Notes under the pieces: generated by a model
Database searches by the model: none
Told to the model about the DNA's origin: nothing
What the model saw: the letters and a program-made list of their open reading frames with translations, nothing else
Program-made: the position numbers and the translations under genes
Part shown: one piece after another, positions 26,938 to 54,759 of the stretch
Layout: the number at the start of each line of letters is the position of its first letter
Position numbering within the stretch: the first letter of the stretch is position 1
Origin: Chara braunii
Taxonomy: Eukaryota > Plantae > Charophyceae
Direction of reading: 5' to 3'
Assembly: GCA_003427395.1 (NCBI GenBank)
Contig: BFEA01000017.1
Span: 1,595,868-1,659,867, forward strand
DNA length: 64,000 bases

Positions 26938-26949
26938 TGGTATCAGAGC
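26938..26949 (+). promoter_or_regulatory. Primer-binding site complementary to initiator tRNA-Met
   Basis: TGGTATCAGAGC directly after ...CA-C. Confidence 0.92.
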
Positions 26950-28314: not shown

Positions 28315-28345
<31 letters not shown>

Positions 28346-28899
28346 TTATTTCTTTATTTATTTTCTGAAATTTTAATTTGCAGCATTTTGAAACTTAGTG
28401 TGTTTATCTTGGTCTCTCCTTTCCCTTGGCACGTTCTTGACCCCATGGGGGGCAAGGAAATGTTGCCGAAAATTTCAAAAAGATAAATATTATTTCTCTC
28501 TTCACATTTTGTTTCCTTATTTCTTTAATTATTTTTATTATCTATTTATTTATTTATTTCTCTCGAAATTTTATTGTTTATTTTTTTTTTTCTTCCCTTC
28601 CCCCTCCATGGTTGCTATTCTCTTTTCTTAATTAGGTCACCGATACCCTATCCTAACCACTCAAATCCCAGTTAGGGTTTTCTTAGGGTTTTTCTAGGGT
28701 TTAGGGTTCTTCTTACCCCCTACTTCCCATTTTCATTCGGGCACCCTGGACCCGAGTCACCCTTCCCCCTTTGCGGGCACCTGCGCTCGACTCACTAACG
28801 CCGCTTGTCGCTTTCTACTGCAGAACCCCGCCTATGCCCTCCGCTCACGCGGACCTCCTCCGGCCCCCTCCAATCCGGCCCGTCACCTCCCCATGGTCG

Positions 28900-30440: not shown

Positions 30441-30774
30441 CCGTTTCGTCAAAATATACATCTTTTATTTTTTGAACGAAATTGAAACCGAGTTTTTTGG
30501 CGGAAAACTCGCCGAAATTTGTTGTTCCTGAGGGTCCAGCGTTTGTAAAATGCTGGACCCCCTGGCTGTACATGGACCTAGCTTGAGACCAGGTACCTTT
30601 AGGCAGTCCTGTCTGGAGGTGCCTGGCCTCAAGCTAGGTCCATGTACAGCGAGGGGGTTCAGCGTTTGTAAAACGCTGGACCCTCAGGAACAACAAATTT
30701 TGAAGAGTTTTCAGCCAAAAAACTCGGTTTCAATTTCGTTCAAAAAATAAAAAATGTCCATTTTGACGAAATGG
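30441..30774. repeat. 334-bp near-perfect palindrome (foldback) inside the Gypsy element
   Basis: Arms of ~165 bp pair around a centre at 30607/30608, e.g. TTTTTTGAACGAAATTGAAACCGAGTTTTTTGGC with GCCAAAAAACTCGGTTTCAATTTCGTTCAAAAAA. Confidence 0.95.
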
Positions 30775-31599
30775 TCGTTTTTCCACGGTTTTCCCCGCCG
30801 TACCGCGCAGCAGGGCCACCACTTCTCGCGCCGCTTCAGCGCGCTCGAGTATGGTGAGCGGGACGTTGTTGCCCCATTGTCGCCTGAGGGTGACCATAGT
30901 AGCGACGAGTCGACGACCTCGACCTCTGTGAGGCCATCCACTACCACCTAGAGGACTCTACCCTCCCTATAGTCGAGCGTTTATAACTCGCCCTCTCCAC
31001 CCTCTCCTGGGCACGCAGCCGCTCTGGTCACGCTGGCGCATCGCCCCCTGAGGTCCCTCAGCAAGACCTCCCTCATGTCTTTGTCCCTCCTCACGGTGTC
31101 TTTTCCGCTGAGGAGCGCACGGGCATTTTGGGACGGTGTGGGTGTTTGCACTGCCGCCAAGACGGTCATACCTCCTCGCGGTGCGCTTACACCGCCGCCC
31201 TCGACCGCCACTACGCTGAGCTCTCTCTCCAGCGTCGTGCTTAGTCCCCCCCCGGCGCCTCGCATCCCCGCGGCGTCTCCTAACCACGGTGCAGTCTACA
31301 CCTGCGCCCTCCTCAGTAGTCAGCTTCCCGACATCTCCGTCGCGGTTTGCCCCTCTCGCTACTGGAGTTGAGGTATCGCAGGACCCGATAGAGTGTACTC
31401 ATCCCTCTGTCGCAATGCCGTTTGCGCCTTCGCAGACCACCGTGTCCCCTCCTACCTCGTTGCGACTACCGACACGTCGAGCCACTCGGTCCGCCCGTTG
31501 CAGCGAGCATCTTGCGACTCGCAAGGACGTTGTGTTCTCCCTTTTGGACTTGAGCATGCTCCAGTCTCGTCAGGAGCAACTCACCCTCCATGTCGCTGC

Positions 31600-34500
31600 A
31601 CTGCGTCACCTTCTCACCATTCTCTCTGACCCTGATCGCACCCTCCCGATCATTCCAGTACGACTCGGGACCCCCACGAGGGTGTACTCTGCGTTGTAGG
31701 ATTCCGGTTCTTAGGGCGACTTCACCCACGTGTGGTGAAAGAAGCCCGCTTACCCACAACAGGGTCTTCGACTCCCATCTCCGTCATCCTAGGGGATGAC
31801 AAGACCCAGAGCTTCTTCGATCAGACGGTCACCGACCTCCCTTTCTTCATCACTATCGAGCCGACTGATCGTCCCCCGGCGTCTCGTCGCCACCGCTCCT
31901 CTGCACATTTCGATGTGATGGAGACAGGGTACAATTTCATTCTCGGTACTCCGTGGTCTCGTCAGTTCCGCAGCACCGAGGCTGATTGGGCAACCAACAC
32001 TCTCGTTCTCAGAACGAAGTGTGGACAGATGTACTCTGTACCTTGCGACACCACGGCCCGATCCACCTCCCCTGGAGCCTCGTGCCCACACGATCTCCGA
32101 CTATCACCGTCACCTCGCCTCGGCATTTCGCCCACTTCATCCGACAGGACGACGTCACCTTCTTTACGGTGAACATTACGGATCTCTTGCACTATGATCC
32201 AACCTATCCAGACACCGAGCTCATCTCTCTGGAGCCAGATCCTCCTTCTATCTTCATGACCTCCATCTCTACTTCCCTCCCTCCGTCGTCTGTCGAGTCG
32301 ACCCCACCGTCGCGCCCTGATGTTGACGCTGAGGAACTCGCACGCTATACGGTCGACCTAAAGCCCGCAGTTCGTGACCACATTCGAGAGTACCACGACA
32401 TTTTCCCATCGTCGTTCTCCTACGCCGGCATCCCACCGATGTGCGACGTCGAGCATTCCATCCAGCTTGTGCCTGACTATCGTGTTCACCACCAGACACC
32501 CTACAGACTCTCGATCCCCGAGGTCACCGAACTCACGCGTCAGTTTGAGGAGCTCCTGAGACTGGGTTTCATTAAACCCAGCAACTCCCCGTGGCGTGCA
32601 CCCGTCCTTTTTGCTCGCAAAGCGGATGGAACTCTCCGTCTCTACATCGATTATTGTGGGCTCAACCACTACACGCTTAAGAAGAGCTACCCCATGCCTC
32701 GTTCCGACGAGCTGTTCGACCGCCTAGCAGGCAACCGCTTCTTTACGAAGATTGATCTTCATTACGAAGATTGATCTTCGTAGCGATTACCATCAGATCC
32801 ACGTCGCTGCAACAGACCGGCCGAAGACAGCGTTCCGATCGCGCTTCGGCCACTATGAGTTTACGGTGATGTCATTCGGCCCCACCAATGCACCCGCTAC
32901 CTTCCAGAGGGCGATGAATGACATCTTCGGGGACATCCTGGAGCAGTACGTTCTCGTTTACCTCGACGATATCTTGATCTACATTCGTACCCTTGAGGAG
33001 CATCTCAAACACCTCAGCGACGTCCTTGACCGCTTGCATCGACATGGTTTTTACGCCATGCTGAGCAAGTGCCGCTTTGCCCAGCACAAAGTGGATTTCT
33101 TAGGACACTATATGTCTGATCAGGGTCTCCATATGGACGACGCGAAGATCACTGCTATTGCGGAGTGGCCCGTCCCCACATCCGCCAAGCAGCTTCACAG
33201 CTTCCTAGGCCTCACTAGCTACTATAGTAATTCCATCCAGGGATACGCTAGGTATTCCTACGTCCTTATCTTCACCCTCCTCCGGAAGAACCCGCCATGG
33301 GCTTGGACACCCTTCCACGAGAACGCCCTCCGCGCCCTCAAGAAGGCGCTGACATGTGCACCGGTTTTTCACCTACCCAATTTTGATCGCTATTTGATCC
33401 TTACCACCGATGCGTCGGACTTTGTTGTAGGAGCAATGCTTTCTCATATTTTCCCTTCTCTCCTAATTCCTATCATCCTTGCATCTCTCGCTTCCCACCC
33501 CCTACCCCTACCACTGCTTCCCGCCTGACGCCTACTAGTCCCGCTACTGACAAGTCTTCTATTGACTATTCTCCTACCATCGCCGAGGACGGTACTGTCG
33601 AGTCTCGCTCAGGTGATTGTCCGATAGTCTTCTACTCCTGTCAGCTCCTGCCCGCCGAGATAAACTACACCGCTGATGAACGTGAGGTTCTCGCAGTAGT
33701 TTATGCTACTCGGCACTAGCGTCACTACCTGCACGGGGCACCATTCACGGTGCGCACGAACAACTCTGTTGTCCAGGCTTTTCTGACAAAGTCGAAGCTC
33801 ACTCCTCGACAGGCTCGCTGGTGGCGCGACCTATCCGAGTTTAATTTCACCACTAAGCATATCAAGGGCGAGACCAATCGGGTCGCAAATGCCTTATCCC
33901 GACGCCCTGACCATAACCTGGAGCAAATCCAGCTCGCTGCCATCTCGGTCACCACCGTCTACCACTCGGTGACCGACGAGTTTCGCACTCAGTACCGCCA
34001 CTGCCCCGACTATCACGACATCCATGCGACCCTTCGGAGTGGCAAAACCGTCCCGAACTACTCTCTCGGGGACAACGGTCTTGTGTACTTGCACGGTTCA
34101 CAGGGCACCAGAGAGCCCCGTATTTGTGTTCCCTCCACTGGATAGCTACGTGTCCGGGCAGTAGCAGAGTTCCATGACCAAGCAGCCGCCGGTCATATGG
34201 GCTTCCACAACACATTGGCTCGTGTGAGCCGCCTGTACATCTGGCCGAAGCGCAAGGACTTTGTGAAGAACTACGTCGCAGAGTGTCCCACCTGTCAGGA
34301 GGTGAACAGTATGAACCACTTGCCTTATGGTTTGCTCCAGCCTCTAACTATCCCTGAGGGTCGTTGGGAGTCCATCTCGATGGACTTTCTCAGTCCTCTT
34401 CGTCCTCCGACCCCCCGCGGTCATGATGCTATTGTGGTCGTCGTCGACCACTTCATGAAGCGTACACGCTTTGTTCCGTGCCGCAATGCCATCAATGCAC

Positions 34501-35629
34501 GTGAGGTTGCCAACATCGTGTCTAACCGAGTCGTGCCTGACCACGACTTACCTCAGAGCATCATATCTGACTGTGACTCGCGCTTTACCAGTCACTTCTG
34601 GCGACGGCTCCACTCGGTGTACGGCACCCAGCTCCGCTTCTCCTCTTCTTACCATCCCCAGACTGATAATCAGACCGAGGTCACGAACAGGACTCTCGGA
34701 GATATTCTCCGAAAGATTGTTTGTGACGACCAGCAGTGGGATCTTCATCTTGCCCACGCGGAGATAGCCTACAACCACGCCGTCTCGCCAGCCACGGGGA
34801 CGTCGCCTTACTATTGCAACCTCGGTTATCACCCTCGTGTCCCCGCGGACTTCCTTCGACCATCACAGATGCACCCCGACACGAGTTGTCCCACGCTGGA
34901 TGATTGGGTTGCACACATGACGTCGATCATGAAGACCGCGCATGAGCACATATCCGTTTCCCAGACTCGCATGGCAGCACGTGTGAGCCGATCGAGGATT
35001 CAAAGTCAGTGATGATGTGCTTATCGATGTCCGCCACTTACAGCTCGAAGCGGACACGCTTCGCAAGTTCCAGCGTCACTTTTTTGGCCCATGCTGCATT
35101 TTCCAAGCCGTCGGTTCTGATACGGCTTTGAGCCCGGTCAGCTTCCGTGTGAAGCTGCCCGGCTACCTACGTCAGGCTCGTGTGCACGATGTCTACCACG
35201 TCTCGTTACTGCCTCCCTACCGCAGACCGTCTGAGCGTTTCGTCGGACGACCATACGAGTGGCCTCCACCCATCATGGTGGACGGCCAAGGAGTTCCTCG
35301 TCTCAGACATCATTGGTCGTCGAGTCACCGACGACAACCCTCCTCACGTCGAGTATCTCGTACGTTAGAAGGGTTACCCTGATGAGGAGGCTACTTGGGA
35401 GGCCCTCGAGCACTTGCAGCACGCTCGCATGTTGGTGTGTGCCTATGACCGTGCTCGTCGTGCTGGGTTGACTGCTCCTCCTCAGCCCACTGACCCTCCT
35501 CCTTCTCCGTCGGCTGAGGAGACCGCTGAAGTTGAGCCCGCTTCATCTGAGACAGACCTTCAGCAGCAGCCGGATGCTTCTGAGCGTCCACAGTGCACTC
35601 GTCGTCATCCTGCTCGATACGACAATTGA
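31600..35629 (+). pseudogene. pol: pol polyprotein remnant: aspartic protease, reverse transcriptase, RNase H, integrase, chromodomain
   Basis: PR: SAL*DSGS (~31690) and FILGTPW. RT: [32 protein letters not shown] (~32960). RNase H: TDASD and NYTADEREVLA. INT: GHMG...CPTC, WESISMDF, YHPQTDNQTE. Chromodomain: EYLVR*KGYPDEEATWE (~35350-35400). Confidence 0.96.
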
Positions 35630-36299: not shown

Positions 36300-36753
36300 A
36301 CCATCCCCTGCCATAATAATCGGGATGCCAACTGGAAGGAAGCCTTTAATATGCTCAAAGAATTGTTGTTTTTTTATTACTTCATTTGGGCCATATACAC
36401 ACAATATTGTTACTATCTCTAGTTCCAACATTGCTAATATATTATATATAGACCCATTTTTCTTCTTCCTTGTCTTCAGCCCAATGTACTGGCTCTATCC
36501 TTGAACCAGGAGGTATCCAAATGGCCACCCCTGAGCTACCTGGTCTCAGGGCATGAGCTTTGAAGGCCCTATGGGGCCAGATTTGTTTACGGGTATGGTT
36601 ATGATCTGGGTTATCCATAAGATGAGTTTCCTGGATGCATATTGCATCAGGCCAATCCCTGTCATCTACCCCTTTTAATTGCTCATATATGGTCTGACGT
36701 TTTGCCTGTTTGGCTAATGCTAATCCATTTACGTTGAGTGATCGAAGATCCAA
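36300..36753 (-). pseudogene. LINE ORF2 N-terminus: APE-type endonuclease, truncated
   Basis: LRSLNVNGL...DAICIQETHL...SSGVAIW, then IPIIMAGD at ~36310, where the sequence abuts the Gypsy 3' region. Confidence 0.88.
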
Positions 36754-36869
36754 ATCTGTCTCTCTTCTTAGCTGTTTTCATTTCTTATCTTTATTGTAAA
36801 AGGCATTTAATATATTAACACCTTCCATCACTTCAAGTTGCTATCCATTTTCACTTGTATGGAGCTTTT

Positions 36870-39730
36870 CTACAAGTTCATCCATTGGGCTGAATCCAAG
36901 GTATCCCGTTCTCCTAACATTTCGTTGAGAAGTATTCTAGATAGCACGACTGTAACATCCGCCTTTGACCAAAAACTACTCTCCTTGATCTTCAACAACT
37001 GAAGTTCCGCAATAGTACCTTGGGACAGCCAGCACAAATTGGCAGTACGGGACTGATCAAATTTGAGATATACATCCCTCAGTGCCATACTTTGAGCTTT
37101 TGTATTCATAATCAGCACTGAAGTACCCCCTGGCGGAAAGTGTTCCAGGAAAAATTCAGCAATTTTTGTCTTAAACCTGGCCATCTCTGACAGCCTTCCC
37201 CCCAAAATACCGGCTACTGTTCCTGGCATGGTTATTTCTCCATGCACTACCCCTTTCGATTCTGACAGACCTATCTCCCACTCCCCCTCCTTTCTTCTTA
37301 CGGGGAGCACCAGGATACCTGGTCTGGAAATCGCCTGTTCTGCATATCCCTTGACCTTGAGTTGCCGTATTTTTTGTCTTTTACTGATCAGTGGTCCTTC
37401 GGGGAGAGGAACTGTGGGGGGCAGAGGAGGTTTTGGATACTGATTCTGCTTTGAGTTCTCCTTTTGACTGTCCCTTTCCTTATTTAGATCCTCCTGTCCC
37501 TCTGTCGTATCATCGTCCTTTGTTATCTTTCCCTTGCCTTGTGAACTTGAGTTGTCCTCCTTGATTATGATTGACAATTCTGGAGAGGGGTCAGAAGGAT
37601 CCTACCCACCCATTGTGCTCGTGCTGGAGTTATTCTGCTTGTGTGGTTCCCCTCTTCTTGCTGCCTTTTTTCAGACCACTGCGGAGACCCATTGTTTGCT
37701 GTCAGATCGGGGCACGGGACTGACTGATAGGTAAGCAGTAAAACCTTGTTTTCTACACCTTTCCCTCCTTCCCCACTCCCTTCCTTTTGATGTTTTTGCT
37801 GAAGGGGAGACTGTACTGAGATCTGGTCTGAGTTTCGAGTGGCTGATACCTGAAGAATCTGTTGTGATTTATTTTCTTTTTGCTGCTCAACAGCCTGATC
37901 TGTAAAAGGGACGGGACTAGTGCCTTGCTGTGGTTTTCCTATGTGAGTTGGCAGTGGACTGAATTTCTGCCGCTGTGACATTCCTTCTCTGTCATCAGTC
38001 GACGACCTCTTATTCTGATCCATACACAGAGCCATTTCACTCTGAGGCAGTTCAAGGATTATATGCGGGTCTGTGCTCTCGGATTCTTGAGACTGGTAAT
38101 CCCACTCCATTAAAGATGATCTTTTAGTGATCTCCCTTGACTGCTCCCCTGAATGCGAGAGCAGTATGAATTTTCTTTCCCCCGTGATCAGTGAGACCAC
38201 TTCCTTCAATTTCACCCCTTCAACAGGACCTAGGTTACTACTGGGAGATTGTTGTGTCATTGCTGACCCTTCGGACAGACCTCCCAGTCGCTGCATTGAG
38301 GAAGGGAGCAATTTTGTCACCAATTCTGAGAAAGATTTTGTTAATTTGCCTTTTGTGGCGCTGCTATTTTTTGTCACTTGCCCTGTATCGATGACTTCTG
38401 CATTGGATTCTGCATTGGTGAGTATAGTTTTCTCTTTTACCAAATGACCTTGCTCTCCCTCATTTTGTCTTAATTGATCTGTAGTAATTTGGTTGTCTCG
38501 AAGGAGTTATTGCTGGTGGGACAAAGGCTGAAATCTGGCTATCACTACTGGCAGCAGTCGATAAAGGACCTGCTGCCAGCTAACTCCCTCTGGCAGGCCA
38601 TTACCCAGTACAATTCTCAGACTTTCACTAGTTTCCAAAAGGGGGACCAGATCCCGGTAAGAGGTGTCCCAGAACTCTTCAGATAGGCCTGTGTATTTTA
38701 CTCTTAGACTGTCCAGAAGCCAATCCGCAATGGTTGCCAAATCCACCCTCTGGCCCACCTCTTTCTCATTCTGCTTCACTACTGCAGTGATATCCGGGGG
38801 GGGGGGTGCCCTTGGGATATGATCCAGTCCCATGGGCTCGGGCCCAAAAGCATCCTTTAGTGCGTCAATCTCCATGGGGATCGGGCTTGTGGTTTTGACA
38901 GTCTGTGAAAGTTTTTTTCCCCCTTGAGATCTGTTCTGTTTTTCCCCCAGATCTTGCTGTTTCGAAGACGAGGAAGAAGCCTGGGCACTATGAACGTGTG
39001 CCTGAGATTTTCCTGTGTTTACAGGCCTGTACGCCATGGAGGCAGACTTACTTGACGTAGGAAGGTAAGCTGCTGCCTGTGGACCCACTTGACGGTATTG
39101 CGGCTGTTTTTTTTTTTTTTTAAGCATTTTCGTCTGTTCTTTTTTCTAGGTTCCCATTTGCCACACTTACCTCCTGGGGACCTTGAAGACAATTGTCTCC
39201 CTGACCTCCCTGTCTCATTTGTTCAGTCGTCAAAGAAGAACCAGCAGAGTTGGATGAGCTAACCTCAGCCATCGATCCTGATGAGTTAGCTCCCAAATTT
39301 TGAGCTGCTGCCATGCCTTTTGGCTTGGAGTTCTGTTGACTTTTGTTCAGTCTGTCTAACGGGCCATTGCTATGAGGGATCCACTCCGCTGGTGGTCGAG
39401 AAGAACGGCGAGGATCACCTCTTCCTTCCCAGGTCCAACCACATGGTTGCCCATTTTGGGTTAATTCATCAATATATACCCAGCCCTCGTAGCCTGGGAG
39501 TACCGGCAGCCATCGATTGGGTCTATGCGAATCCCTCCTCAGTTGACCGTCCCTAGTGACAATGTGTTGTGGGTGTTGTGGGCAGGCAGTCTCGGTGCTA
39601 CGACTTGTCCAAGGTTTTTAGTCCCCATGCTCCCATGTTCAGAACCACGGGCAGAGAAGTGCGGGAACGGCGACAAGCAGAGGGAATTACCATCTAGATG
39701 TGATCTCTGCAACTGAAAGATCTTCACCAT
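36870..39730 (-). pseudogene. Probable LINE ORF1 region, fragmented
   Basis: Series of long same-strand ORFs (235, 292, 206 and 64 aa; Q/S/K-rich) directly upstream of the endonuclease ORF; no domain recognised. Confidence 0.55.
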
Positions 39731-40246: not shown

Positions 40247-40429
40247 TAAACCACTAGTACGTTTGCTGCTTCAGAAATGAGGGAAAACGCCAGCTCCAGA
40301 AGAATTTGAAGCCCGGGCCCGACGACGGTTGCCATTGATAAATCTAATCGGCGGCCGTCCTTTCGTTTTGGCCTCCTGAAAGGTCGGAGGCTCGCTATTT
40401 TCCGAAACGACAAAGCTTCTAGTGGTTTA
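40247..40429. mobile_element. ~183-bp MITE-like element
   Basis: Terminal TAAACCACTAG...CTAGTGGTTTA, extending as an imperfect IR for ~30 bp; superfamily unclear. Confidence 0.55.
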
Positions 40430-41267
40430 AGCAAGCATCCAGTGCACACGCAAGAAAAGCAGATAGATCGACAGCAGGGCAAGGGAGCCAAGTGGGAGGG
40501 AGGCAGGAAATTCAATGCAATACAAGACAAGCATGCATGGTGAGAAGTTGCGAATCATCGGCCAGGCAGTCTAACAAATACGTTAAACACGATGCGCAGT
40601 GAATTAACACGTTTGCACACCTGGTCCACAGGAAGAACTCTGGAAATAGTAAGTTCACTTAACCATCAGGAGTCAGAGAGTACCTTTGGTGAAAGTCTGT
40701 CACCACCAGGGAACACAGAGACACAGGCATCATGAATATAGAAGCCCCACACTATTTGGCACACCTCAAAGGTGTGCGTGTGTGTGGATATTACGTAGCA
40801 TCAAACTTCCGCGACGTGTCGTGGCATGTTGTGTCAAAAGTATGGTAACCCTTGAAAATGAGCCCGCAGCCTGGTATGTCCATGAAATGGCATGAAACAA
40901 GCGCACATAAAGTCATGCACTTGCCATAAAAGCAACTAATCACAAAGCAAAAACAAAAAGCCAAACAGCAGCAAGCCAAAAGGCAGAAAGGCAAAGGCAG
41001 CAATGCACAAAAGACGGTAAAGCAAAGGGGGGAAAGCAACAAGGCATAGGACGAGCAGCGGGCAGCAAGGGACACAGGCTGGAGGGCATGGGGGAGGCGA
41101 GTGGGCAAACACAGCACAAGGCAGTGAGGCACAAAAGACAGCCCAACAAAAGACACAGGCTGGACGGAACGGGGGAGGTGGGTGGGCAGACAAACACCAC
41201 AAGCCAGCAAGCCGAAAATGAAAGAGCGAAAAAAAAAAAAAAAAAAAAAAAAAAAACAGATGATGAA

Positions 41268-41323
41268 AGATTATTTCATCGGAGTTGCACCGACTCGTCA
41301 GGAGGCTGAACCCTCGACAATCT
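41268..41323 (-). ncRNA. Type III hammerhead ribozyme, intact catalytic core
   Basis: Minus strand: AGAUUGUC / GAGG-GUUCAG-CCUC / CUGACGA / GUCGG-UGCAACU-CCGAU / GAAA / UAAUCU. All three stems pair; predicted GUC cleavage lies between 41316 and 41315. Confidence 0.88.
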
Positions 41324-42144
41324 CCGGGATCTCCATATAGCATAATAGCAGGCAATGGCTCAGTGAAGCACGAGGCGACGCTGCAGGGGCAACTCAACTG
41401 CAAAGCGTCAAAGCGAACTGCATAGATCAACACGGCAAGCGGACAGGCAGCAAAGCAACCGCACAACGACAAGCAACAGCACCACGACACGCAGCAGAAC
41501 TGCAGCACTGGCAAAACTGCACATCACACAAGCAAAATGCACAGGAGGATGGGGTACGCAGATGGACAATAAGTCAACAGCGGAACGACGCACAGGGCAA
41601 AACTGGCAACACAGCCAAACTACACAACAACACACCAACTGCAAAGAACGACGTGAGAAGCAAGCGGGATGGGCAGCAAGGCAGCTGCGGAGCATAGACA
41701 AGGCAGTCCACACAGCCGATGAGGAGCAACGCCATCAAAGACCGACTTACACCAGAAGTAGAGCCACGCAGACTGTCGGTCCCCACCACCCGTTGACCCA
41801 GGAAGCCACCCTCGACGGACACCTACCATCAGTCATAGACTCATAGACCATATCCACCACAGGCATTGCATGCAGCGCATCTCCCCTAGGAGGCTAGGAG
41901 TCCTGCAGGCACCTCAGACAACCGACCACTGACTATTTAGCACTTCTTAAAGGTGCTCACCTCGACCCACAGAAAGAGAGAGAGCAAGAGAAAGGAAAAA
42001 CATAGATACAGAAACATGATTGTGTGCGTGTGTGTGTTTGTATGAGCGTGTGCATGTGCGTGTGTTTGGGGGGGAGTAGACCTCCGTGACAGTATTGCGG
42101 CTGCAACCTGCATGTTGCATCAAAAAGTACGTCAAAGAAATAAC

Positions 42145-43001
42145 CATGGCAACCGGCTGGACGTCTGGACCAGAATCCAGACGGTCCGGTTGTCTGGGTC
42201 TGGGTCCGGTGTCTGGTCCGGTAGGTCTGGATTGGGCCCAATTTTGAAATATTCGAAATTTTTTTGGGGGGGGCCTAGGACGTTTTCCGGTCCTAGTCTG
42301 CCCCCAGAAAATGCCCCCGGTATTTTTTGGCCGTTTCAGGGCCTACCGGACACAGCCAGACTCTTCCAACAGCTCCCTCTGCTGTTGTACTCCACTGGTA
42401 GTTCATCGGATGAGGACGAGTCTGATACTCTGATTCCAAAAATGAAGCGCTGGCTGCAAAGCGCCACAGAACATCAAGCNNNNNNNNNNNNNNNNNNNNN
42501 NNNNNNNNNNNNNNNNNNNNNNNNNNNNNNNNNNNNNNNNNNNNNNNNNNNNNNNNNNNNNNNNNNNNNNNNNNNNNNNNNNNNNNNNNNNNNNNNNNNN
42601 NNNNNNNNNNNNNNNNNNNNNNNNNNNNNNNNNNNNNNNNNNNNNNNNNNNNNNNNNNNNNNNNNNNNNNNNNNNNNNNNNNNNNNNNNNNNNNNNTAGT
42701 GTTGTGTGTGCCTTTGTGAATGTCTGTGACAGTATTGACTCTATTGAGCTGTCAAGTTGTGAATAGTCAAAGACAGTAAGCTGTGGTTAGTACCGCTTAT
42801 TACTAATGCTTTTTTTTTTCTTTTTTTCTTTTTTTGTTCAGTCCGGACATTTTTGTGTCTGCTGTACCCGTCCAGACGGTCCGGGTCCGGTCATGTCCAG
42901 TTGTCCGGTGCCTGTCCGGAATACCGGACGTCTGGACCAGTCCAGACAAATGTATGGGCCTCAGTCCAGACATGTCCGGGTCCGGGTCCGCGGTTGCCAT
43001 G
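42145..43001. mobile_element. hAT-like non-autonomous element (contains an N-gap)
   Basis: TIR CATGGCAACCG...CGGTTGCCATG, 8-bp TSD GAAATAAC (42137-42144 and 43002-43009), subterminal GTCCGG/GTCTGG repeats. Confidence 0.9.
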
Positions 43002-43179
43002 GAAATAACACTCCTTAAAAGGGATTGCAGCCAGGTTTGCCTAAGGAAGGAATGCAAACATGCAAAGGCCACGAAGTGCAGAAGAATAAACGACAGGAAA
43101 AAGTACAAAGTAAAGAAACTTTAATTTGTCTTTTTTTTTAAAAACAAAGCAAAAAGAAAAGAAAAAAAACTATGACGAC

Positions 43180-43235
43180 AGACTGATTCGTCGAACTTGC
43201 ACCAACTCATCAAGAGGCTGAATCCTCGACAATTT
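43180..43235 (-). ncRNA. Type III hammerhead ribozyme copy, core mutated
   Basis: AAAUUGUC GAGG AUUCAG CCUC UUGAUGA GUUGG UGCAAGU UCGAC GAAU CAGUCU; C3>U and A15.1>U. Confidence 0.75.
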
Positions 43236-43916
43236 GTGGAATCCCCTTATTCATATTTTGACTCATGAACTCTTTTAACCCCTGTTGTAACCGAACCACT
43301 AGCCGCACAAGCAGCAAGGCAAGGGCGAGGCAACAAGGTGATGGGCGGCAAGCAGCAGCAAGGTACATACTAGACTGAAGGGTCACTGAGGGAGAGGTGG
43401 GTGGGCAGACAAACAACAAGGCAAGCAGTAAGGCAGCAATATGAGCAGCAGGCCATAAGGGGATGCAACAGAGCAAGGCTATAAGGAAGACGAATGACTA
43501 AACAAGCATTACGACCCATTGAGCAGCGGCCAACCAAGCAGTAGGGCAAGAAGGCAATCAGGCAACACAGCAGCAAGGCACAAAGCAGCGAGGCAGCGAG
43601 GCAAATGGCAGTCAAACGACAAGACAAGCATCATGGAAAGACACGGCCAGCAGCACGGAAAAAGACTAGTGCACAAGTGGATGAAAAAAAAGGCTGGGAG
43701 TCGGCACAGGCAAAGCAGTCGACGCAACCAACACAGTTCAAAGCAGATTCATACAGAGCTCATCACCTAGTACTCACATCACACATAGAACTGTTTTTGG
43801 CTGTGTTGCCTGCTTTATCTGTGATGACAATGCAGTCCTCACCTCCCTCGGAGCCAGCAACCCGCTTTGAGGGGAACGTCTGTCATCACCCAAGGAACTT
43901 GCGGATACGGACATCC

Positions 43917-43985
<69 letters not shown>

Positions 43986-46397
43986 CGTGTGTCCGTGTGT
44001 GTGCGTGTGTGTTGAGATGTGTGTGTATACACACATGTATAGGTTATCCTTAACGCGATACATCGCGTTCACCATCCATGCAGTCACTATCAGACTATTC
44101 CGCAAGTAATCACAACAGGGGTAGGGAGTTTGGATACGTCGGTAGCCAGGCACAGCCATACTTCGGAATTTCCGCTGATATCAACTAGATTCTGTAAGCA
44201 CACAATATTTCAGAGGAACCGCGAAGTAGGTGAGCGAAGAAGGGGAGGGGGAAGACAACAGGGGGAAGAAAAAAGGGAAAGGAAAGAGGATCGCGAAACG
44301 AGGATGTACTTCGTTTATGGACTTCATGCAAATGCTCCTCAAAGCAAGCCATGTTCAGTCACAAATCGATACGACAATCAAAGATTATTTTGCCCATTTT
44401 TCAAAGAAGCGAAGGGACCTGCCTAATAGCATTATTACTGATCACACCAAACGTTAGTTCGTCACACCATGCAAAAAGGAGAAAGGAAGGACTTCTGGCT
44501 GAATCCCAAATGCTCGTGTTTATTAGCGCTGCTCCTTCCCCAAGGATACCGAATCAGCAGAACCATCAGTCTCTCTTTCATTCGAACAAGTACACTCAGC
44601 AAAACAACATGATCCCCAAAACTACTACATACTAATCACCAGGTCTTCATGTCTCCAGGTCTTCTTTATCAGCGACGAACTTGGGTAGCACCTTCCTCCT
44701 TCCCCATACTAATATGCTCACGGACGGAAGTTCGAGCACCACGGTGTAGCCTCACTCGCAATTATTCCTACCAACAACCGATCCCCCCTGGACCCTAGAT
44801 TACTTGTCAATCGTTGAGTACGCAATCCTCACACATTTGTTCCTCCGAAGAGAGTATGATCACCACGGTAGAGTCGTGCCCCCTACTATTCCCAACACCA
44901 ATCGATCAATCCATAGATATGTATGAACTGCCAAGCATCGAGCATGCACCCCATGCCATCCTCCCAGCCAAACGTTTCATCAGAGCGCTCAACAATTAGA
45001 AACGATCGAGTGGCACCCGATCGCACATAGTACTCCGAGGATTTCACGCAGCGAGCTACTAATACGGATTCGTCACGACCCTCAATCCAACCCGACGCTT
45101 CAGATCTTTATCTTCATACAGAGGAGACCGCTTTAATCCACAGCGCACTTTCAGCGGCAGCATCCTTGTGTGACAACTTTGACAGAACAGTCGCACATCC
45201 ACCCACATCAAGACGCAGAATCCTAATCAATTGGACGAGTCTTCAGAGCGCAGTTCCTAGCATTAGCACACAGGGACCATCACAAATACAGGGATCCGAT
45301 GGAACGGAGGTAAGTACATGTGGATGATTCATGTGAGATCCAGTCAAACTATGATTAACACCCCTTATAACTTCCGACAGCCAAGATTACCACATAAAGG
45401 GTAGGCTGAGGATGCAAGATTTGTAGATGACAAAGCTAGGGACTGTGGCATATTCCCTTAAACATGTTTTTCGCCATGTAGCCATGTAATAGCTCATCAG
45501 AGGGATTAGAATAGCATTTGCAAATACAATCGCATAGCGAAGTTTCCTTAGGGGCAAGTATACCACACTCATGAAAAAATGGAGAAGGGAGAGGGAGAGG
45601 GGAGGGTATGGGATTGGGAGTATTGAAGACCGAGATACATCACCTCTTGCGGCACATCTTCATCATTCTCGCCAGTAGGCTGTTGCGCGAGCATCTCGTC
45701 AATATCATAGGGGTATTCCATCATGTGACCTTTTCAATCTCTACCTAAACTGATCTTTGGTCTGCACGAGATAGCGATCCCGAGCGGAAAGATGGAGATT
45801 TGAAGCGGGAAGGAGATGGCGAGGGCAATTGAGTATGGAGTGCCGCGTGGGGGAAGATAGGCAGTGAGTCTCACCGAAAAAGAAGGCGTGAGTGCGAGGA
45901 GCGGGGAGAAGGAAACAACTGTCATGGATTCCGAATCAGGCAGCGTGACAAGGTAGCAAACCGCATCAGGCAGTCAAGCGGTACTCGCATAACACGCAGT
46001 ATCGATCGCATGTGGAGTCGATACGCGAGATATACGAGAAACCGGTCAAAAAACGCTGGAGAGTTCGTGAGGGATAATACCAGGATCGGGAATTCATAAA
46101 TAGGGCCGACTATCTTGGTTCAGCCGGCATTTTCCTGGTTCCTCAAAAAATGGGCGCGGTGTCTCAAAAGGACTCAGAAGTAAGTGGCTCCTGGGCGAGA
46201 GATCTTATTCGTCCTATGCTCATTTTTATTTTTTTTTCATGTTTTCTTTTTTTTCTTTTTCTCACCTTTAGCAATCTGAGCCCAGTCGTATGTATGGGTG
46301 GGGTTTCACACTATGGGCTAACCCTTAGGAAACGTTCTTTTCGAAGCAGGGTAGGGCCTATTACTTCTGGGGAGGGCCGCCTGGTGAGCATATACCC

Positions 46398-46477
<80 letters not shown>

Positions 46478-46634
46478 GCGAAATCCCAGAGTATGCTATG
46501 TCACTCCACAAATTTGAAGGTATGTCGTATACCAGATCAGACCATAATGAACCCAACCTTGCATGCTCCTATGAGCCAACGACTAGAAAGAAACAAAGAC
46601 AGGCAACACCAAGGATACACAGAAAAGTAGTTAT

Positions 46635-46690
46635 AGACAGTTTCGTTGGACTCGCACCACCTCATAAGGAGGCTGAACCCTCGACGGTCT
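46635..46690 (-). ncRNA. Type III hammerhead ribozyme copy, core mutated
   Basis: AGACCGUC GAGG GUUCAG CCUC CUUAUGA GGUGG UGCGAGU CCAAC GAAA CUGUCU; G5>U. Confidence 0.78.
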
Positions 46691-46837
46691 GCAGGGCCTC
46701 CTCATAAGTTAACGGGTCTGAGTCATAACCAGCTTCAAACCAAGCATCCCCAAGCTGTTTTAATTTGAGTAATTACACCTCATGTTCCCGACGAATCGCA
46801 TGATTCGCATCATATTTGAAGTTTCCATTTTTATCTC

Positions 46838-49400
46838 TTTTTTTTTTTTTTTTTTTTTTTTTGAANAACCCAATCAGGTGCTAGATGTGCTGATGAGAGC
46901 AGACACCTCTAGCACCGGCGGGGAGGCTCCATCTATTGGTGGGGAGCGTCACCTGCTGGGAACCGGGCCCAGCGTCCCATTGGATACATCATTGTGTCAC
47001 CATGTTTATTGGGCTTATGGCCATTACAGTTCTTGCTCCGGAGCATCCTACTTTCCCTCTGGGCTGCATATGTTACCCTTCCAATTTGCTGAGCTCCTGC
47101 TACCCTGTGGCCTAGCCTCACCCAGGATGGTGTCCACCGTGCTTTGATATCTACAGTCCTCTTACTACCAGTGGCAGAACTCCTATCCTCGGTGATTGCA
47201 GGCCCCCTGCTGTTGCACAACAGTTCTAATTACCCCCCATTACCCAGCTGTAGATTACGCTATGCTTCATACCTACCTGAAGGATGTTTCAGACCCGTAA
47301 TCCCATGGAAGCAGCTGATGTGTGTTTCTAGTTGCCCCCCATTACTCATTACGCAGCTGTACTCCCAGGTCCAACGGCGCTGTAGCACACCTGGCAACTG
47401 GTCTTGTCCTTGTTTTGTCGAAGAGGAGGGCGAGGGTCGTGGCTGCTGCTCCTGTGGAGCACCCCTGTCCTTTCCTGGTATCGATGTGTTGTCATTTGCT
47501 GTCATGTGCTTGGTCCTGTTCTGTGGAGACCCTGGGGAGTCGCTGACTTCGCTCCTGCTCTCTCCATTTCCCCGTTCCTCTTCTCCAGTGCTGTATCTTG
47601 TGTGACCTCTGCTATCTGATGGCTGCAAACTGTCACCCTGAACTGCCGTCCTCAGTCTCACTTTTCCCAGAATGTAGGGAATAAGGTGTCGAAGGGAGGG
47701 GGGATGGGGGAGGCAGGAGGAGGGATGGGAGTTGGGGGGGTGCGGGAGGGGGCTGCTGAGGGAGGGTGGAGTGGGCTGGGAAGATGGGGACTGAGCTTCA
47801 GCCCAGGAGGTGCGCCTGTCGGGGCCCAAGCAGGGGGCGATCCCAGGATTGTCATGCCACCAACACGAAGTTAGGTTGCAGGTAGGGGACCTGGAAACTA
47901 TGGTAGGGTCTCCTTTGCCAAGATGACTCTGAGCTTCGCCAGTGTTTCCACCGGATGTTGAGGTTGGCGTCCAGATCAGAGAATCTTCTGTGCGGGTCCT
48001 TGCCAAGTCTGGAGGTAGGCTTCCTTAAGGATTGCTTTGACCGTGTGATCATTTTCCTCCCGATAACTCCATATGAACTTTTTCCAAGCAGCTTGGGTGT
48101 GGGATCTGATATCCTCTTCTATCACTTGTTGGGCTTGTATCAACCCAAACTGATGGTCTTTTCTTTCGAAAGCACATCTGGCTCTCCAGGCCAGCATAAG
48201 GACCTGCAATCTCATATAAGAGAATAGGTTGGTTGCATAAGGAGACCATTGTGATTGCGAGGGGTGTTTTTTCCCAAGCAGCAGCAAACCCAGATCCCAC
48301 AGGATATACAGACCCGTGAGGGAGTGGAAGGCAGCGTCCCACCACTGCCATAGTTGGGTGACCATGGGGCAAGCGAGCAGGCAGTGTTCCAGCGTGGCCC
48401 GAGCCGGCGGTGATGATCTGCCACAGTAGGTACAAATGGGTGACAGCAGCCCTCTTTGTTCCAGGTCCGTTCGCGAAACCAACCAATCAGGGGTAGGCAG
48501 GCAGCGGTGCAGGATCTGCCATTGGAGGGCTCTTTGGCTGGTGGGCATGATTTTGACACAATCGGCCCATGGTGGGTTGTCCATCGACCCCGGCTGTAGA
48601 GGAGAGTCGCGTTCCCATCTTGTCAGTAGTGTTTGGTTTATTGTGGATGTGGGGCACGAGGTTCTGTATCCTCCTTTGACCGTGTAGTCCCATATATGCA
48701 TGGTTTTCACTCCTGGCCATTCCCATTCCGCCGGGTCGAAAGGCAGCATGGCGACTGGAATTGAGGATTCATATACAAAGAGCGCTTCATGGGGGTCCCC
48801 TACCACACGCACATGCATCAGTCCCACCCAATGTTCTGTCTCGTCTAGGTCCTCATTCCTCGCGAGTTTAGAGAACCTGGCGCCTAGTTCGTGGGGGACA
48901 TATGCTTCCAATGAGCAGCTGCCATTGTCGTTTTTGTGGATTCTATATATGGTCGGTGGCCTAGGAAGGTCTGCATATTTAATAACCCAGTCGTCCTGCC
49001 GGAACATCGGGCCAGCTTGGAGGGTGAGCCTCCAGGCTAGGGGAAGGGCCTCCTTGATCTTCTGCAACCTGTCTCCTACATTCCTTGCACGTTTGAGCCT
49101 ATACCCTTCAAAAAACACAAGTCCCATTGGTCGAAAAGAATCAGAGACTTTTTGGCTTTCTGAGGAGACAGAGCACTTTTGTTTCCCCCTTGTTTTTTTG
49201 AAAAGGGTGATCATGGCCTTGAGATATCATTGTCGAACTGACCGGACCCAGGGAATTGGGAATAAGACTAATCAGTTGATTTCGTCATCCATCTGGTTCC
49301 ACCAGAACTGGAACACAGGTGTGTATTTCAACAGTTCATGGGTGTACCAACTGAGCAAGGGCAGTTGGTACTTTCTGTCAGTTTCTGAGCATTTTTTCTG
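46838..49400 (-). mobile_element. 5'-truncated L1/Tx1-like LINE (ORF2 C-terminus, 3' UTR, poly(A))
   Basis: 412-aa ORF with zf-RVT-like motif (WQILHRCLPT...CTYCG...TLEHCLLACP), a hairpin-rich 3' tail at 46876-46979 and a poly(T) run on + at 46838-46862. Confidence 0.85.
47976..49214 (-). pseudogene. LINE ORF2 C-terminal fragment with CCHC zinc-binding region
   Basis: YTVKGGY, LQWQILHRCLPT, CxxC...EHCLLAC, WRAR motifs typical of L1-clade ORF2 ends. Confidence 0.88.
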
Positions 49401-50326
49401 AATTTTTCATGTTCGTTTAAGATAAATAACAGAGGCATGTGCGAACTCTGCAAATGGGCAAAACGTTGTAAGGCATGCAGAGCAGCATGTGACACACGGA
49501 GGCAGAAAGGCAAGCATATGGGCACACAACAACACAGCTCAGCATTCAGCATGGTATGCATTAGACAGCATATAACAAGGGTTACAACTTGAAGGCAACA
49601 AAGTAGCAGGGCAAGGCGCAGAGCAGCACAGCACCAAGGCAAGAGAACAACAAAGCAGCAAGGCAACAAGGCAGTGAGAAAGCAAGGCATCAAGGCATCA
49701 AGGCAGCGAGGCATCAAAGCAGCAAACGAACAAGGCAGCAAGGCAAACAGTAGGGCAGCGCAGCGAGCGGCAAGGGATTAATGCAGCAAGGCAAGAAAAC
49801 CAGCAAAGGCAGCACAGTGAGCAATAAGGGAACAGGGCACTGAACAGTATGGCTAGCAGGTGGTAGGCAGGTGGCACACCAACCAGCAAGAGACATAGCA
49901 ACTCAGGAACCCACGGACAGTACCCTGTTCACATCATACGGAAAACCCAGCAGATTGGAGGTTGATGCTACTGGTTTTTCAAAAAAAAAAAAAAAAAAAA
50001 AAGCGGTTGATGGCACCATCAAGACCCACTAAGTCACCCGACAACTGTCTGTCACCAGCTGACGATACAGAGAAACAGGCATCCAAAACACAGCCACCCG
50101 CTTCACAGTTATGCAGGCACTTTGTACAAACAGTCACCGACCATTTGGCACAACCTAAAGGTACAGTAACTACAATTCTATACTTAGAAATCACGCAGGA
50201 AAAGGCCAAACCACATAGCAAGTAGACAACAACATAAAGAAAACTCTTTGGAGAACAAGAAAAAGGATTTATAATGATGACCATCATGATGATAACAATA
50301 ACAACAGTCATAATAATAATGATATC

Positions 50327-50416
<90 letters not shown>

Positions 50417-50613
50417 NNNNNNNNNNNNNNNNNNNNNNNNNNNNNNNNNNNNNNNNNNNNNNNNNNNNNNNNNNNNNNNNNNNNNNNNNNNNNNNNNNNN
50501 NNNNNNNNNNNNNNNNNNNNNNNNNNNNNNNNNNNNNNNNNNNNNNNNNNNNNNNNNNNNNNNNNNNNNNNNNNNNNNNNNNNNNNNNNNNNNNNNNCTT
50601 TGCAACGCTGTCT

Positions 50614-50654
<41 letters not shown>

Positions 50655-52550: not shown

Positions 52551-52904
52551 TTGTCAACCCTCCCAGTAGGCCTTCCAAAGTTTTAGTCAAAAACTCAAAC
52601 CTGATTATCTATCATGTCTGCTGATTATGTTGGGACGTTGGACCCGATTTCCAGCAGGTGTTGCTCCCCACCAATAGACTGGAGCCTTCTACATGTGTGT
52701 GTGTGTGAGGGGGGGGGGGACCCGTATCATAATGGTCTCTTTTCTCGTTTTTGTCCCTCTTTGTTTTGGTGTTGTGACACTGTTGTCCCTTCGTTTTGCA
52801 AGATCCTACTGACCAATGCTTTGTTTTTGAACGTTTTTCTTTTTTTTTTGTCAAACGAAAGTGTCCGGCTCACCACACCTTATCATATTTTTTATTTTTT
52901 TTAA

Positions 52905-53760: not shown

Positions 53761-54653
53761 CGGCCGCTTTGTCTTTTCTTGCCTATTTCAAACTAAAAGT
53801 TGGACACAGCCACAGTTTCCTCGAAATAGGAAGAAACAAAATGCCGCCTAGAGTTCTCAGACCGGTTGTGCAAGCGTTGTGTTGCCGCTCTGCAGCCAGC
53901 TCATGACTTGAATGTCCGTTCTCCTTTTCACCCCCCACCACGGGGCAGATATGCAAACTCTGAAGTTCTGAGCTGTGTCGCATATTCAAAATAGTTACTT
54001 GCAGTGCAGCACCGAGAAAAGTCTGTTTCAACTTTCAAGTGATAAAAAATGCTCGTCAACACTGACTCCCTGGGGCAACGCATTTCACGGATCCAAAGGA
54101 GTGCACATATTGGGCCATCAAGCCCCATAACTCAACCCAATCCTCATCTTTTTTTGTTTTTTTTCACACACAAATATGCCATACAAAAAGTTGTGTCTAA
54201 GTGTCTGCTGTGTTGCAGTTGCAGTCTATCAGAGAGTTGATGTACTTGTAATCCATTGCCAGAACTCTGGAGGTGTGTCGAAGATGCAAGTGACTTGAGA
54301 GTGTGTACTTTGTCATTTAGAACATCTCAATCCATCAGGGACCGAAGAACAGTAAACCACCAGTTCGCTCAAAGCAGAGTGTTGCTCTTACGGGTTTATG
54401 CGGTTAGAGCATTTCGATTCAGGTCTGAGCTGGCAGCAAAAGCAGCAGGTCACTCTGAAAACGTGCAGTTCCAGGCTCGTGAGCTTGGAAGGTAGCTTCG
54501 TCAACTTAGGCTCGTGGTTTTAAGAGAGGGGGGGGGGAGGGGGGCGGCGGGGGGGAGGGGAGAATAGAAGAACAGGTTTAAACTTTATGTTCTGGATAAA
54601 GAAATGATTGGCAAACGTTCCTTGTCTTTTTTTTAATGTTTTTTTTCTTTTTC

Positions 54654-54759
54654 AATTTGAACCATATCTCTGTTTATTTGTGTCTTCCTTGTACTGTTGT
54701 ATAGGGGCCGTGCTAATCTTATCTTTATCATTCCTCTTTTAATGGATGTCTCAAAGGAT
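54654..54759 (-). pseudogene. U6: Near full-length decayed U6 snRNA copy with an A-rich 3' flank
   Basis: ATCCTTTGAGACATCCATTAAAAGAGGAATGATAAAGATAAGATTAGCACGGCCCCT...AAGGAAGACACAAATAAACAGAGATATGGTTCAAATT aligns end to end with plant U6. The ACAGAGA box is mutated and there is no T-run terminator. Confidence 0.9.

Follow-up and report, generated by a model that had tools for sequence, protein, structure and literature searches.

Hammerhead motifs on the minus strand

The analyzed window, a 64-kb stretch of Chara braunii DNA, carries on its minus strand three copies of a 56-nt motif, HH1 (41268-41323), HH2 (43180-43235), and HH3 (46635-46690), exactly where the first-pass annotation had located them and nowhere else. 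A search with a 25-nt core pattern, allowing up to 3 mismatches, recovered the same three sites and gave 0 hits in 100 shuffles. A model built from the three copies, which scores HH1 at 99.8 bits, found no additional hammerhead in the 64 kb; a presumed second copy in the head of the element was rejected. The Rfam model RF00008 (Hammerhead_3) aligns end to end with all three motifs, covering model positions 1-54, with scores of 32.6 bits for HH1, 25.9 bits for HH3, and 19.5 bits for HH2 (E values of 5.4e-4, 0.042, and 2.8, respectively, in an 8-kb search). A covariance-model match, as sought in the first-pass annotation, was thus obtained for every copy, but all these scores remain under the gathering score of 48.5 bits, as does that of the intact-core hammerhead on an independent contig, L001 (37.1 bits).

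The end-to-end alignment bears out the proposed type III topology, with stem I (GAGG/CCUC, 4 bp) closed by the loop GUUCAG, stem II (5 bp) closed by a 7-nt loop, and stem III open. Standard pairs occupy 91.7% of the 48 pair cells in the three motifs, compared to 33 to 58% when the partners are slid. The conserved core (C3 U4 G5 A6 N7 G8 A9, G12 A13 A14, A15.1-U16.1, and H17) is present in HH1 and in the L001 copy and in neither HH2 nor HH3, so that the description of copy 1 as the only complete one in the window holds. HH1 retains CUGACGA, GAAA, and GUC, with a G-U pair at 10.1-11.1; its cleavage site is predicted between 41316 and 41315, and its hammerhead fold has a free energy of -12.8 kcal/mol, compared to -14.5 kcal/mol for the minimum-free-energy structure. 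HH2 reads UUGAUGA (C3>U) and GAAU (A15.1>U), whereas HH3 reads CUUAUGA (G5>U) and has one mismatch in stem II; because of these changes, both are presumed to be inactive. The structure-compatible stem variation noted previously is only partly upheld: the two stem pairs with three states each are genuine, but their covariation score was reached by 223 of 500 shuffles and is not significant with three sequences. Judged by their sequences, the three motifs are genuine type III hammerheads, most of them mutated.

An array of noncoding elements separated by (CA)n tracts

Each hammerhead resides in a noncoding element of ∼1.0 to 1.3 kb that carries a single copy of it at a constant internal position, ∼700 nt from the 5' end and 150 to 480 nt from the 3' end, in agreement with the earlier suggestion of a ribozyme-bearing noncoding retroelement family. 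The elements are arranged head to tail, all on one strand, and the hammerhead strand is A-poor (11 to 13% A). Element E1 (40788-42020, minus strand; ∼1.23 kb, 11% A) is collinear over its full length with the copy on L001. It consists of a 5' head, a TG-rich region with an 8-nt periodicity (about 41340-41730), a pre-hammerhead block, HH1, a T28 tract (41229-41256), a CT/TG-rich region, and a 3' terminal block that carries a small hairpin. Element E2, on the same strand, is represented by its 5' and central part (43003-43917), with a TG-rich region (about 43300-43640) and HH2, and by a 3' terminal part (42066-42143) that contains the same conserved 3' block as E1 and L001. The two parts are separated by a nested DNA-transposon-like insertion (42144-43002), which breaks E2 at 43003; its 12-nt terminal inverted repeats (42144-42155 and 42991-43002) are perfect, and the target duplication is AAATAA (6 to 8 bp). 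An assembly gap (42480-42696) lies within this inverted-repeat element, between copies 1 and 2; no DNA contig spans it, so its length is nominal, and it touches no hammerhead and affects no element boundary.

The third hammerhead belongs to E3, whose 3' part (46476-46837, minus strand) includes HH3, 148 nt of upstream sequence, and a 149-nt tail that extends to the (CA)n tract. Farther along, E3a (49400-50328, minus strand) comprises the family head, which aligns with those of E1 and L001, and a TG-rich region (49590-49850). E3a may be the 5' part of E3, split off by a nested poly(A) LINE fragment (46838-49399, minus strand) with a zf-RVT open reading frame (ORF) at 47976-49214, a 3' tail at 46838-46980, and an A25 tract at 46838-46862; no target duplication of this LINE was found. 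At the other end of the array, the next element, E0, extends from 40770 downwards. The spacings between the hammerheads (1,912 and 3,455 nt) come from independent, diverged elements and nested insertions. The window also contains a Gypsy element, with ORFs at about 29 to 35 kb, and the closest relatives of its reverse transcriptase are all Chara braunii proteins (62 to 88% identity).

A (CA)n tract was found at every element junction. On the minus strand, these are a short (CA)n-like tract that separates the 3' end of E1 from the E0 head (40771-40787), a decayed tract where the 3' end of E2 faces the 5' end of E1 (42021-42065), and microsatellites at the 5' end of E2 (43918-44026), the 3' end of E3 (46401-46475), and the 5' end of E3a (50329-50416), the last of which runs into an assembly gap (50417-50597) and resumes at 50609-50653. 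The 3' end of the element is defined, with the conserved hairpin-bearing block ending ∼17 to 22 nt ahead of the tract, and the 5' ends vary by about 50 to 190 nt and likewise adjoin (CA)n, in 5 of the 5 junctions. The tract could alternatively be a templated 3' tail instead of a target; its presence at the 5' junctions fits a target preference better. Integrated copies always contain an uncut hammerhead, with the upstream strand of stem III present. Compared to dinucleotide shuffles, the predicted folds of the element RNA show no excess of secondary structure (z = +1.0 and +1.4), and they are not rod-like.

Conservation, abundance, and transcription of the family

No other module of the element is nearly as well conserved as the hammerhead. 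Its 56 nt show a mean identity of 81% among the copies (93% between E1 and L001), compared to 40 to 61% elsewhere in the element, and the family-wide majority letters restore both CUGAUGA and C11.1, which is the preferential core conservation expected from the first-pass annotation. At position 17, family members have C, A, or U, with no G at the reporting threshold of at least 10% of reads or depth. Over the whole element, E1, E2, and E3 are 50 to 55% identical, whereas E1 and L001 share 63%, so that neighbors in the array are less similar to each other than E1 is to a copy on another contig.

The hammerhead core is present in the Chara braunii genome in roughly 10^4 to 10^5 copies: the DNA word depth summed over the core is about 1.9e5 to 5.5e5, compared to about 5 to 12 for single-copy contigs. 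Two more family fragments were recognized in the 159 kb of other Chara DNA that was examined. RNA depth reaches 120 to 300 over the core and is about 0 to 2 in the flanks, and nearly all of the reads are only partial fits; paralogues elsewhere are transcribed, and E1 has no locus-specific transcription. In these oligo-dT libraries, which behave as unstranded and yield reads from paralogues, read starts do not pile up at 41315, and many reads pass uncut across the site. Given the core changes in HH2 and HH3 and the lack of locus-specific transcription of the HH1 element, the elements at this locus are dead.

Origin of the array and relation to known retroelements

The reading that we favor, with a probability of about 60%, is that all three motifs descend, as relics, from a single type III hammerhead and lie inside old copies of an abundant noncoding, A-poor, (CA)n-inserting retroposon, and that the array arose by serial insertion with a Chlamys-type reverse transcriptase acting in trans. 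In source copies, the ribozyme would process transcripts of head-to-tail arrays, whether read-through or multimeric, into RNA of unit length, which might be religated into circles. The RNA would then be copied in trans, most plausibly by the reverse transcriptase of the Chlamys Penelope-like elements of C. braunii, and the array would have grown through separate, independent rounds of target-primed reverse transcription, all into the same (CA)n microsatellite. Such serial insertion would fix the orientation, placing all three hammerheads on the same strand, and it fits the head-to-tail order and the (CA)n tracts at the junctions. The choice of mobilizer is based on published data (Craig, Yushenova, Rodriguez, and Arkhipova 2021, PMC8557442): canonical hammerheads were reported from Chlamys-2_cBra and the PLE-X families of C. 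braunii, with (CA)n and (C)n as insertion sites of Chlamys elements. Neither the window nor the 159 kb of further Chara DNA that was examined contained a Penelope-like ORF (reverse transcriptase or GIY-YIG). Chlamys elements would be the likeliest mobilizers, and the present elements can be, at most, nonautonomous dependants of Penelope-like elements.

It is unlikely, albeit the most serious of the competing origins, that there is no separate family and that these are 5'-truncated derivatives of autonomous Chlamys elements with hammerheads, representing their 3' UTR or pseudo-LTR portions. Penelope-like elements usually show strong 5' truncation and partial tandems, as might be reflected in the variable 5' ends described above; among the Chlamys elements, the hammerhead of Chlamys-2_cBra is 3' located, and tandem repeats occur in several families (PMC8557442). 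However, E1, E3a, E0, and L001 all have the same noncoding head beside a 5' (CA)n tract and lack any upstream coding remnant, which argues for a defined short unit and not for random truncation of a 4- to 8-kb element. The defined 3' block with its small hairpin and the variable 5' ends correspond to the layout of "stringent" LINE/SINE pairs. Together with the absence of LTRs, they could indicate a SINE-like non-LTR element moved by a LINE reverse transcriptase that reads the 3' stem-loop and (CA)n tail, with the hammerhead as a passenger or processing signal. This origin is less probable still: the LINE fragments in the window end in poly(A) and not in (CA)n, the 5' junctions favor a target preference over a templated tail, and the only published (CA)n-targeting retroelements found for C. 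braunii are Penelope-like (PMC8557442).

The first-pass annotation drew an analogy with retrozymes whose tandem hammerheads release ∼1-kb monomers. In its classical plant form, hammerheads in two LTRs free a circularizing ∼1-kb monomer that is moved by Gypsy elements, and the type III ribozyme, the ∼1-kb units, and the Gypsy element in the window are all compatible with it. The analogy fails in the structure of the array, and this origin is the least probable of all: similarity around the hammerheads extends over just 60 to 110 nt (77 to 84%), with no long direct repeats or LTRs; neighbors are diverged; two of the three cores are mutated; the flanks are microsatellites and not 4-bp duplications; and the RNA lacks excess structure. 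A search for a tRNA-Met primer-binding site (PBS) found none in the elements; the sole exact match, at 26938, precedes the Gypsy ORFs by a short distance and is far from the hammerheads, and the only match in the element region has two mismatches and falls inside the nested transposon. It is nearly as improbable that a conserved repeat segment merely resembles a hammerhead and was never catalytic. The subthreshold Rfam scores, the 4-bp stem I, the lack of a cleavage signature in the unstranded oligo-dT reads, which come from paralogues, and the nonsignificant covariation among three copies could be taken that way; on the other hand, all 13 core nucleotides, the three helices, and a GUH site occur together in HH1, in L001, and in the family majority, position 17 is only C, U, or A, and no other part of these highly diverged elements is as well conserved as the motif.

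The favored reading, that of a noncoding (CA)n-inserting retroposon, can be extended to a third architectural class of retrozymes, defined by a type III hammerhead and a non-LTR, microsatellite-targeting, noncoding organization, with RNA cut from arrays, circularized, and copied by a Chlamys Penelope-like reverse transcriptase primed on (CA)n. This extension is speculative and probably incorrect in its full form; if true, circularization and (CA)n-primed copying would explain why the internal ribozyme is uncut and why (CA)n occurs at both ends, and the occurrence of such a class in a streptophyte alga would connect plant LTR retrozymes, with their type III hammerheads, to the hammerheads found in Penelope-like elements.

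In plants, type III hammerheads are tied to LTR retrozymes and viroid-like RNAs, whereas type I hammerheads are found in Penelope-like elements and animal retrozymes. Features of both camps meet in the present Chara braunii family, which is abundant, transcribed, and non-LTR and has a type III hammerhead. Among the algae, Chara is closely related to land plants, and the family could show how ribozyme-bearing nonautonomous retroelements originated in the green lineage. Because the family scores under the Rfam gathering score, tens of thousands of ribozyme motifs in this genome escape standard pipelines. The locus itself contains decayed copies only and is of value as an illustration of serial insertion into a single (CA)n microsatellite. 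The suggestion that the family may be undescribed in this lineage needs to be narrowed: hammerhead-bearing, (CA)n-targeting Chlamys elements were published in 2021 (PMC8557442), but our literature search found no description of the present noncoding family.

By their published description, the hammerhead-bearing Chlamys elements (Chlamys-2_cBra and the PLE-X type) share with this family the host genome, a hammerhead in the 3' region, a (CA)n bias, frequent 5' truncation, a head-to-tail arrangement, and a very high copy number (PMC8557442); in contrast to them, the present elements are only ∼1.0 to 1.3 kb long and encode no gag-like ORF, reverse transcriptase, or GIY-YIG domain. Plant LTR retrozymes (Cervera, Urbina, and de la Pena 2016, PMC4918200) are similarly type III, noncoding, ∼1 kb long, and nonautonomous, with abundant RNA, but they have a hammerhead in each LTR, a PBS, a polypurine tract, and 4-bp target duplications, whereas the elements described here have a single hammerhead, microsatellite flanks, a hammerhead strand with 11 to 13% A, and RNA with no excess structure. 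Lacking LTRs, a PBS, and a predicted rod-like fold, they resemble retrozymes, but not those of the classical plant kind. The HDV-like ribozymes of R2-type elements (PMC3774820) also are self-cleaving ribozymes in target-primed retroelements and can free the element RNA from a cotranscript. They are located at the extreme 5' end and stay whole after cleavage, whereas cleavage at the internal hammerhead would remove its own upstream stem III strand, so that simple 5'-end processing cannot explain its inheritance. Metazoan non-LTR retrozymes, proposed to be nonautonomous Penelope-like sequences (PMC7229834; bioRxiv 10.64898/2026.07.22.740005), are likewise noncoding hammerhead repeats without LTRs, with a presumed Penelope-like dependence and head-to-tail copies from which unit-length RNA would be cut out. 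However, they are type I, about 150 to 400 nt long, and organized in near-identical tandem units, whereas the Chara elements are type III units of ∼1.1 kb, whose diverged, independent neighbors (50 to 55% identity) are split by (CA)n.

Hammerhead motifs and their integrity

The three 56-nt motifs that the first-pass annotation described as hammerhead ribozymes are present on the minus strand at positions 41268-41323, 43180-43235, and 46635-46690 (copies 1, 2, and 3, respectively). Allowing up to 3 mismatches, a 25-nt core pattern matches these three sites only, with no match in 100 shuffles. The order of stems and core (stem III 5' strand, GUC, stem I, CUGAUGA, stem II, GAAA, stem III 3' strand) bears out the proposed type III topology; stem I consists of GAGG/CCUC closed by the loop GUUCAG, and stem II has 5 bp and a 7-nt loop. 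In the Rfam check suggested at the time, Hammerhead_3 aligns to all three copies over their full length, scoring 32.6 bits for copy 1, 19.5 for copy 2, and 25.9 for copy 3. Because all these scores are below the gathering score of 48.5, a default Rfam scan of the window at gathering thresholds returned no match. No further copy was recovered when the whole window was searched, filters off, with a covariance model derived from these three.

Copy 1 has the complete core that had been ascribed to it, with every core nucleotide present and the C at N7 being permitted; its stem III is, however, AU-rich, and 10.1 pairs with 11.1 as G-U. The core substitutions reported for the other copies are C3>U and A15.1>U in copy 2 and G5>U in copy 3, all of which would abolish activity according to established hammerhead biochemistry. 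The locus is a set of three decayed copies with an intact core in only one of them. Standard pairs occupy 91.7% of the pair cells in the three copies, versus 33 to 58% with the partners slid. Both of the stem pairs described as occurring in three states are real, but with n = 3 their covariation is not significant, its score being equaled or exceeded in 223 of 500 shuffles.

Two other candidates were rejected. A fourth hammerhead relic, spotted by eye at ∼41787-41833 in the head of E1 (the element holding copy 1), gives no match to the family model and has no hammerhead fold; its local alignment does not stand out from that of shuffles (39/500; 186/500 for L001, an independent contig with an E1-like element). 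A marginal family-model match at 36837-36925 (E = 2.1) is in frame of a LINE ORF1/APE region and was taken as noise. A LINE 5' region at 36442-39314 (minus strand) comprises three consecutive ORF1-like ORFs that match no Pfam family; after them an apurinic-type endonuclease ORF begins (36442-36753, minus strand), recognized by eye only.

Organization of the elements

Similarity among the three hammerhead sites spans only 60 to 110 nt. Exact-pattern scans found no match in the viral and prokaryotic genome collections and a single contig, L001 (BFBZ01011546.1; 1,534 bp), in the metagenome collection; its collinearity with E1 over >1.1 kb delimits the latter to positions 42020-40788 (minus strand). 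From 5' to 3', E1 comprises a head, a TG-rich stretch of 8-nt periodicity, ∼25 conserved nt before the hammerhead, the hammerhead itself, a T-rich tract (T28), a CT/TG-rich stretch, and a 3' block that includes a small hairpin and ends 17 to 22 nt before (CA)n. The elements around copies 2 and 3 (E2, with its nested transposon removed, and E3) have the same layout. All of them have defined 3' ends, and their 5' ends abut (CA)n at somewhat differing element positions. The A content of the hammerhead strand is 11 to 13%, and neither a protein-family match nor a long conserved ORF was found within the elements.

E2 is interrupted by a DNA-transposon-like insertion whose perfect 12-nt inverted repeats lie at 42144-42155 (CCATGGCAACCG) and 42991-43002 (complement of the former); a direct AAATAA duplication also bounds it. 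When it is excised, the sequence downstream of copy 2 runs into a 3' block alignable with other family members. The assembly gap at 42480-42696 falls within this insertion; no DNA contig bridges it, and the hammerhead finding is independent of it. An additional family head (50328-49400), possibly the 5' part of E3, is separated from copy 3 by a nested poly(A) LINE, for which the target duplication sought in order to join the two parts was not found. The poly(A)-ended 3' tail of this LINE is supplied by a short repeat family with four copies in the window that are 75 to 92% identical (46847-46980, 60131-60270, 52631-52687, and 55499-55550).

The 2.4-kb stretch at 44027-46400 (minus strand), located between two (CA)n tracts, contains no hammerhead; at its 3' end it has a perfect 8-bp hairpin (AACGCGAT/ATCGCGTT) ∼20 nt before (CA)n, a layout shared with the hammerhead elements. 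The stretch could be a related element that targets (CA)n. Within E0, the next element downstream of E1, a 38-nt inverted repeat pair with a spacing of 107 nt (40247-40429; TAAACCACTAG... / ...CTAGTGGTTTA) looks like a miniature inverted-repeat insertion. Elsewhere, the window contains a Gypsy-type LTR retrotransposon (26938-35012, plus strand) with an exact tRNA-Met PBS (26938-26949), an RVT_1 and RNase H ORF (32752-33528, plus strand), and an integrase ORF (34197-35012, plus strand). The closest relatives of its RT ORF are all Chara braunii proteins (62 to 88% identity), and the best matches outside this species show ≤52% identity. There are also two U6 snRNA-like matches on the minus strand, at 54651-54759 (41.1 bits) and 23010-23072 (36.3 bits), against an Rfam gathering score of 44.

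L001 carries an intact hammerhead with a GUA site (37.1 bits). Its positions 1-86 are identical to positions 1449-1534, so it was assembled from either a tandem array or a circular molecule; the 1,448-bp unit includes a whole hammerhead element and a ∼290-nt spacer between two (CA)n tracts. Two further family fragments were found in the other Chara DNA examined (159 kb from gene look-ups). One of them, a short-tailed copy at positions 21343-21510 of the locus L006, is 5'-truncated inside the hammerhead: it begins at CUGAUGA, is joined on its 5' side to (TAGA)n, and ends at (TA)n after a ∼100-nt tail. Its sequence agrees with the majority flank of the RNA reads; the end of the tail is repeated at L006 21151-21169, adjoining a (GT)n-like tract. 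The other is a long-type copy, interrupted within the hammerhead by what appears to be another insertion.

Divergence, abundance, and transcription

E1, E2, and E3 are mutually ∼50 to 55% identical, whereas E1 and L001 share 63% identity overall and 93% in the hammerhead. The lower identity among the neighbors argues for independent insertions rather than a single tandem event; judging from these comparisons, they would represent diverged subfamilies inserted into one (CA)n locus. Mean hammerhead identity among four element copies is 81%, compared with 40 to 61% elsewhere in the elements. The first-pass annotation had named a lack of preferential core conservation as grounds for refutation; the conservation observed instead favors a selected ribozyme.

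One DNA run and three oligo-dT RNA runs with the same species label were mapped on 40900-43700. The summed DNA word depth of the hammerhead core is ∼1.9e5 to 5.5e5, versus ∼5 to 12 for single-copy contigs, a rough indication of 10^4 to 10^5 family copies. Spurious ORFs extending across the hammerhead were also used to look for more copies; this gave no candidate and is uninformative on copy number. The majority letters of the family restore CUGAUGA (41297) and C11.1 (41278); position 17 is C or U in the family reads and A in L001, and G never occurs at the reporting threshold.

RNA depth is 120 to 300 over the hammerhead core and ∼0 to 2 in the flanks. Nearly all the reads are partial fits with 90 to 95% likeness, indicating that they come from paralogues and that the window locus itself has no detectable transcription. 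In these libraries, which were poly(A)-selected and show unstranded behavior, neither read starts nor read ends pile up at the predicted cleavage site (41316/41315 in copy 1), many reads cross this site uncut, and no back-joints occur at the hammerhead. Such libraries are unsuited for detecting either a read-start pile or a back-joint, so the lack of these is no evidence against cleavage. In each run, ∼100 to 130 reads match the hammerhead only beginning with loop 1, their upstream sequence being a different one (window positions 41311-41323). This alternative sequence agrees well among the reads (0.83 to 0.9) and lacks the stem I 5' strand; these reads represent a transcribed variant or a chimera, unable to form the same ribozyme.

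Proposed mobility and comparison with known retrozymes

Microsatellite flanks together with 3' ends that are defined and 5' ends that vary form the signature of target-primed reverse transcription. If the (CA)n target were strand-specific, this would fix the orientation of the elements and hence place all copies on one strand. Where source copies stand head to tail, their multimeric or read-through transcripts could be trimmed by the ribozyme into single units and perhaps then circularized, and the element RNA would be copied into (CA)n by a trans-acting RT. Given the type III topology, cleavage parts the hammerhead from its own upstream stem III strand. Every integrated copy retains this strand, along with the conserved upstream sequence; therefore, the template RNA was either uncut at the site or re-ligated.

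The likeliest source of such an RT, by inference, would be the Chlamys Penelope-like elements. Craig et al. (2021, PMC8557442) report (CA)n and (C)n as targets of Chlamys elements, very high copy numbers of these in the C. braunii genome, and canonical hammerheads in two C. braunii subclades. A Penelope-type ORF was not detected by Pfam among ten long ORFs of the window, and neither the window nor any of the other Chara loci retrieved contains a match to the GIY-YIG motif. The LINE fragments of the window end in poly(A), which speaks mildly against a LINE partner.

Of the earlier proposal of a retrozyme-like family, the non-coding hammerhead family stands, but the tandem arrangement of plant retrozymes does not, as the defining features of plant LTR retrozymes are absent. 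Its suggestion that the family might be undescribed holds insofar as the literature search found no description of this non-coding family, but hammerhead-containing Penelope-like elements of C. braunii have been published (PMC8557442). A viroid-like rod structure was not supported: compared with shuffled sequences, the RNA of the elements shows no stronger folding (z = +1.0 and +1.4). Assignment to the plant LTR retrozymes was rejected: the Chara elements have neither LTRs nor a PBS and, unlike those retrozymes, are not flanked by 4-bp duplications. In the current literature, hammerheads of type III are placed with the plant LTR retrozymes, and those of type I with Penelope-like elements and the non-LTR retrozymes of animals (bioRxiv 10.64898/2026.07.22.740005; PMC11722881). 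The Chara family, being type III, non-LTR, non-coding, and microsatellite-associated, falls outside both the plant LTR and the animal non-LTR definitions.
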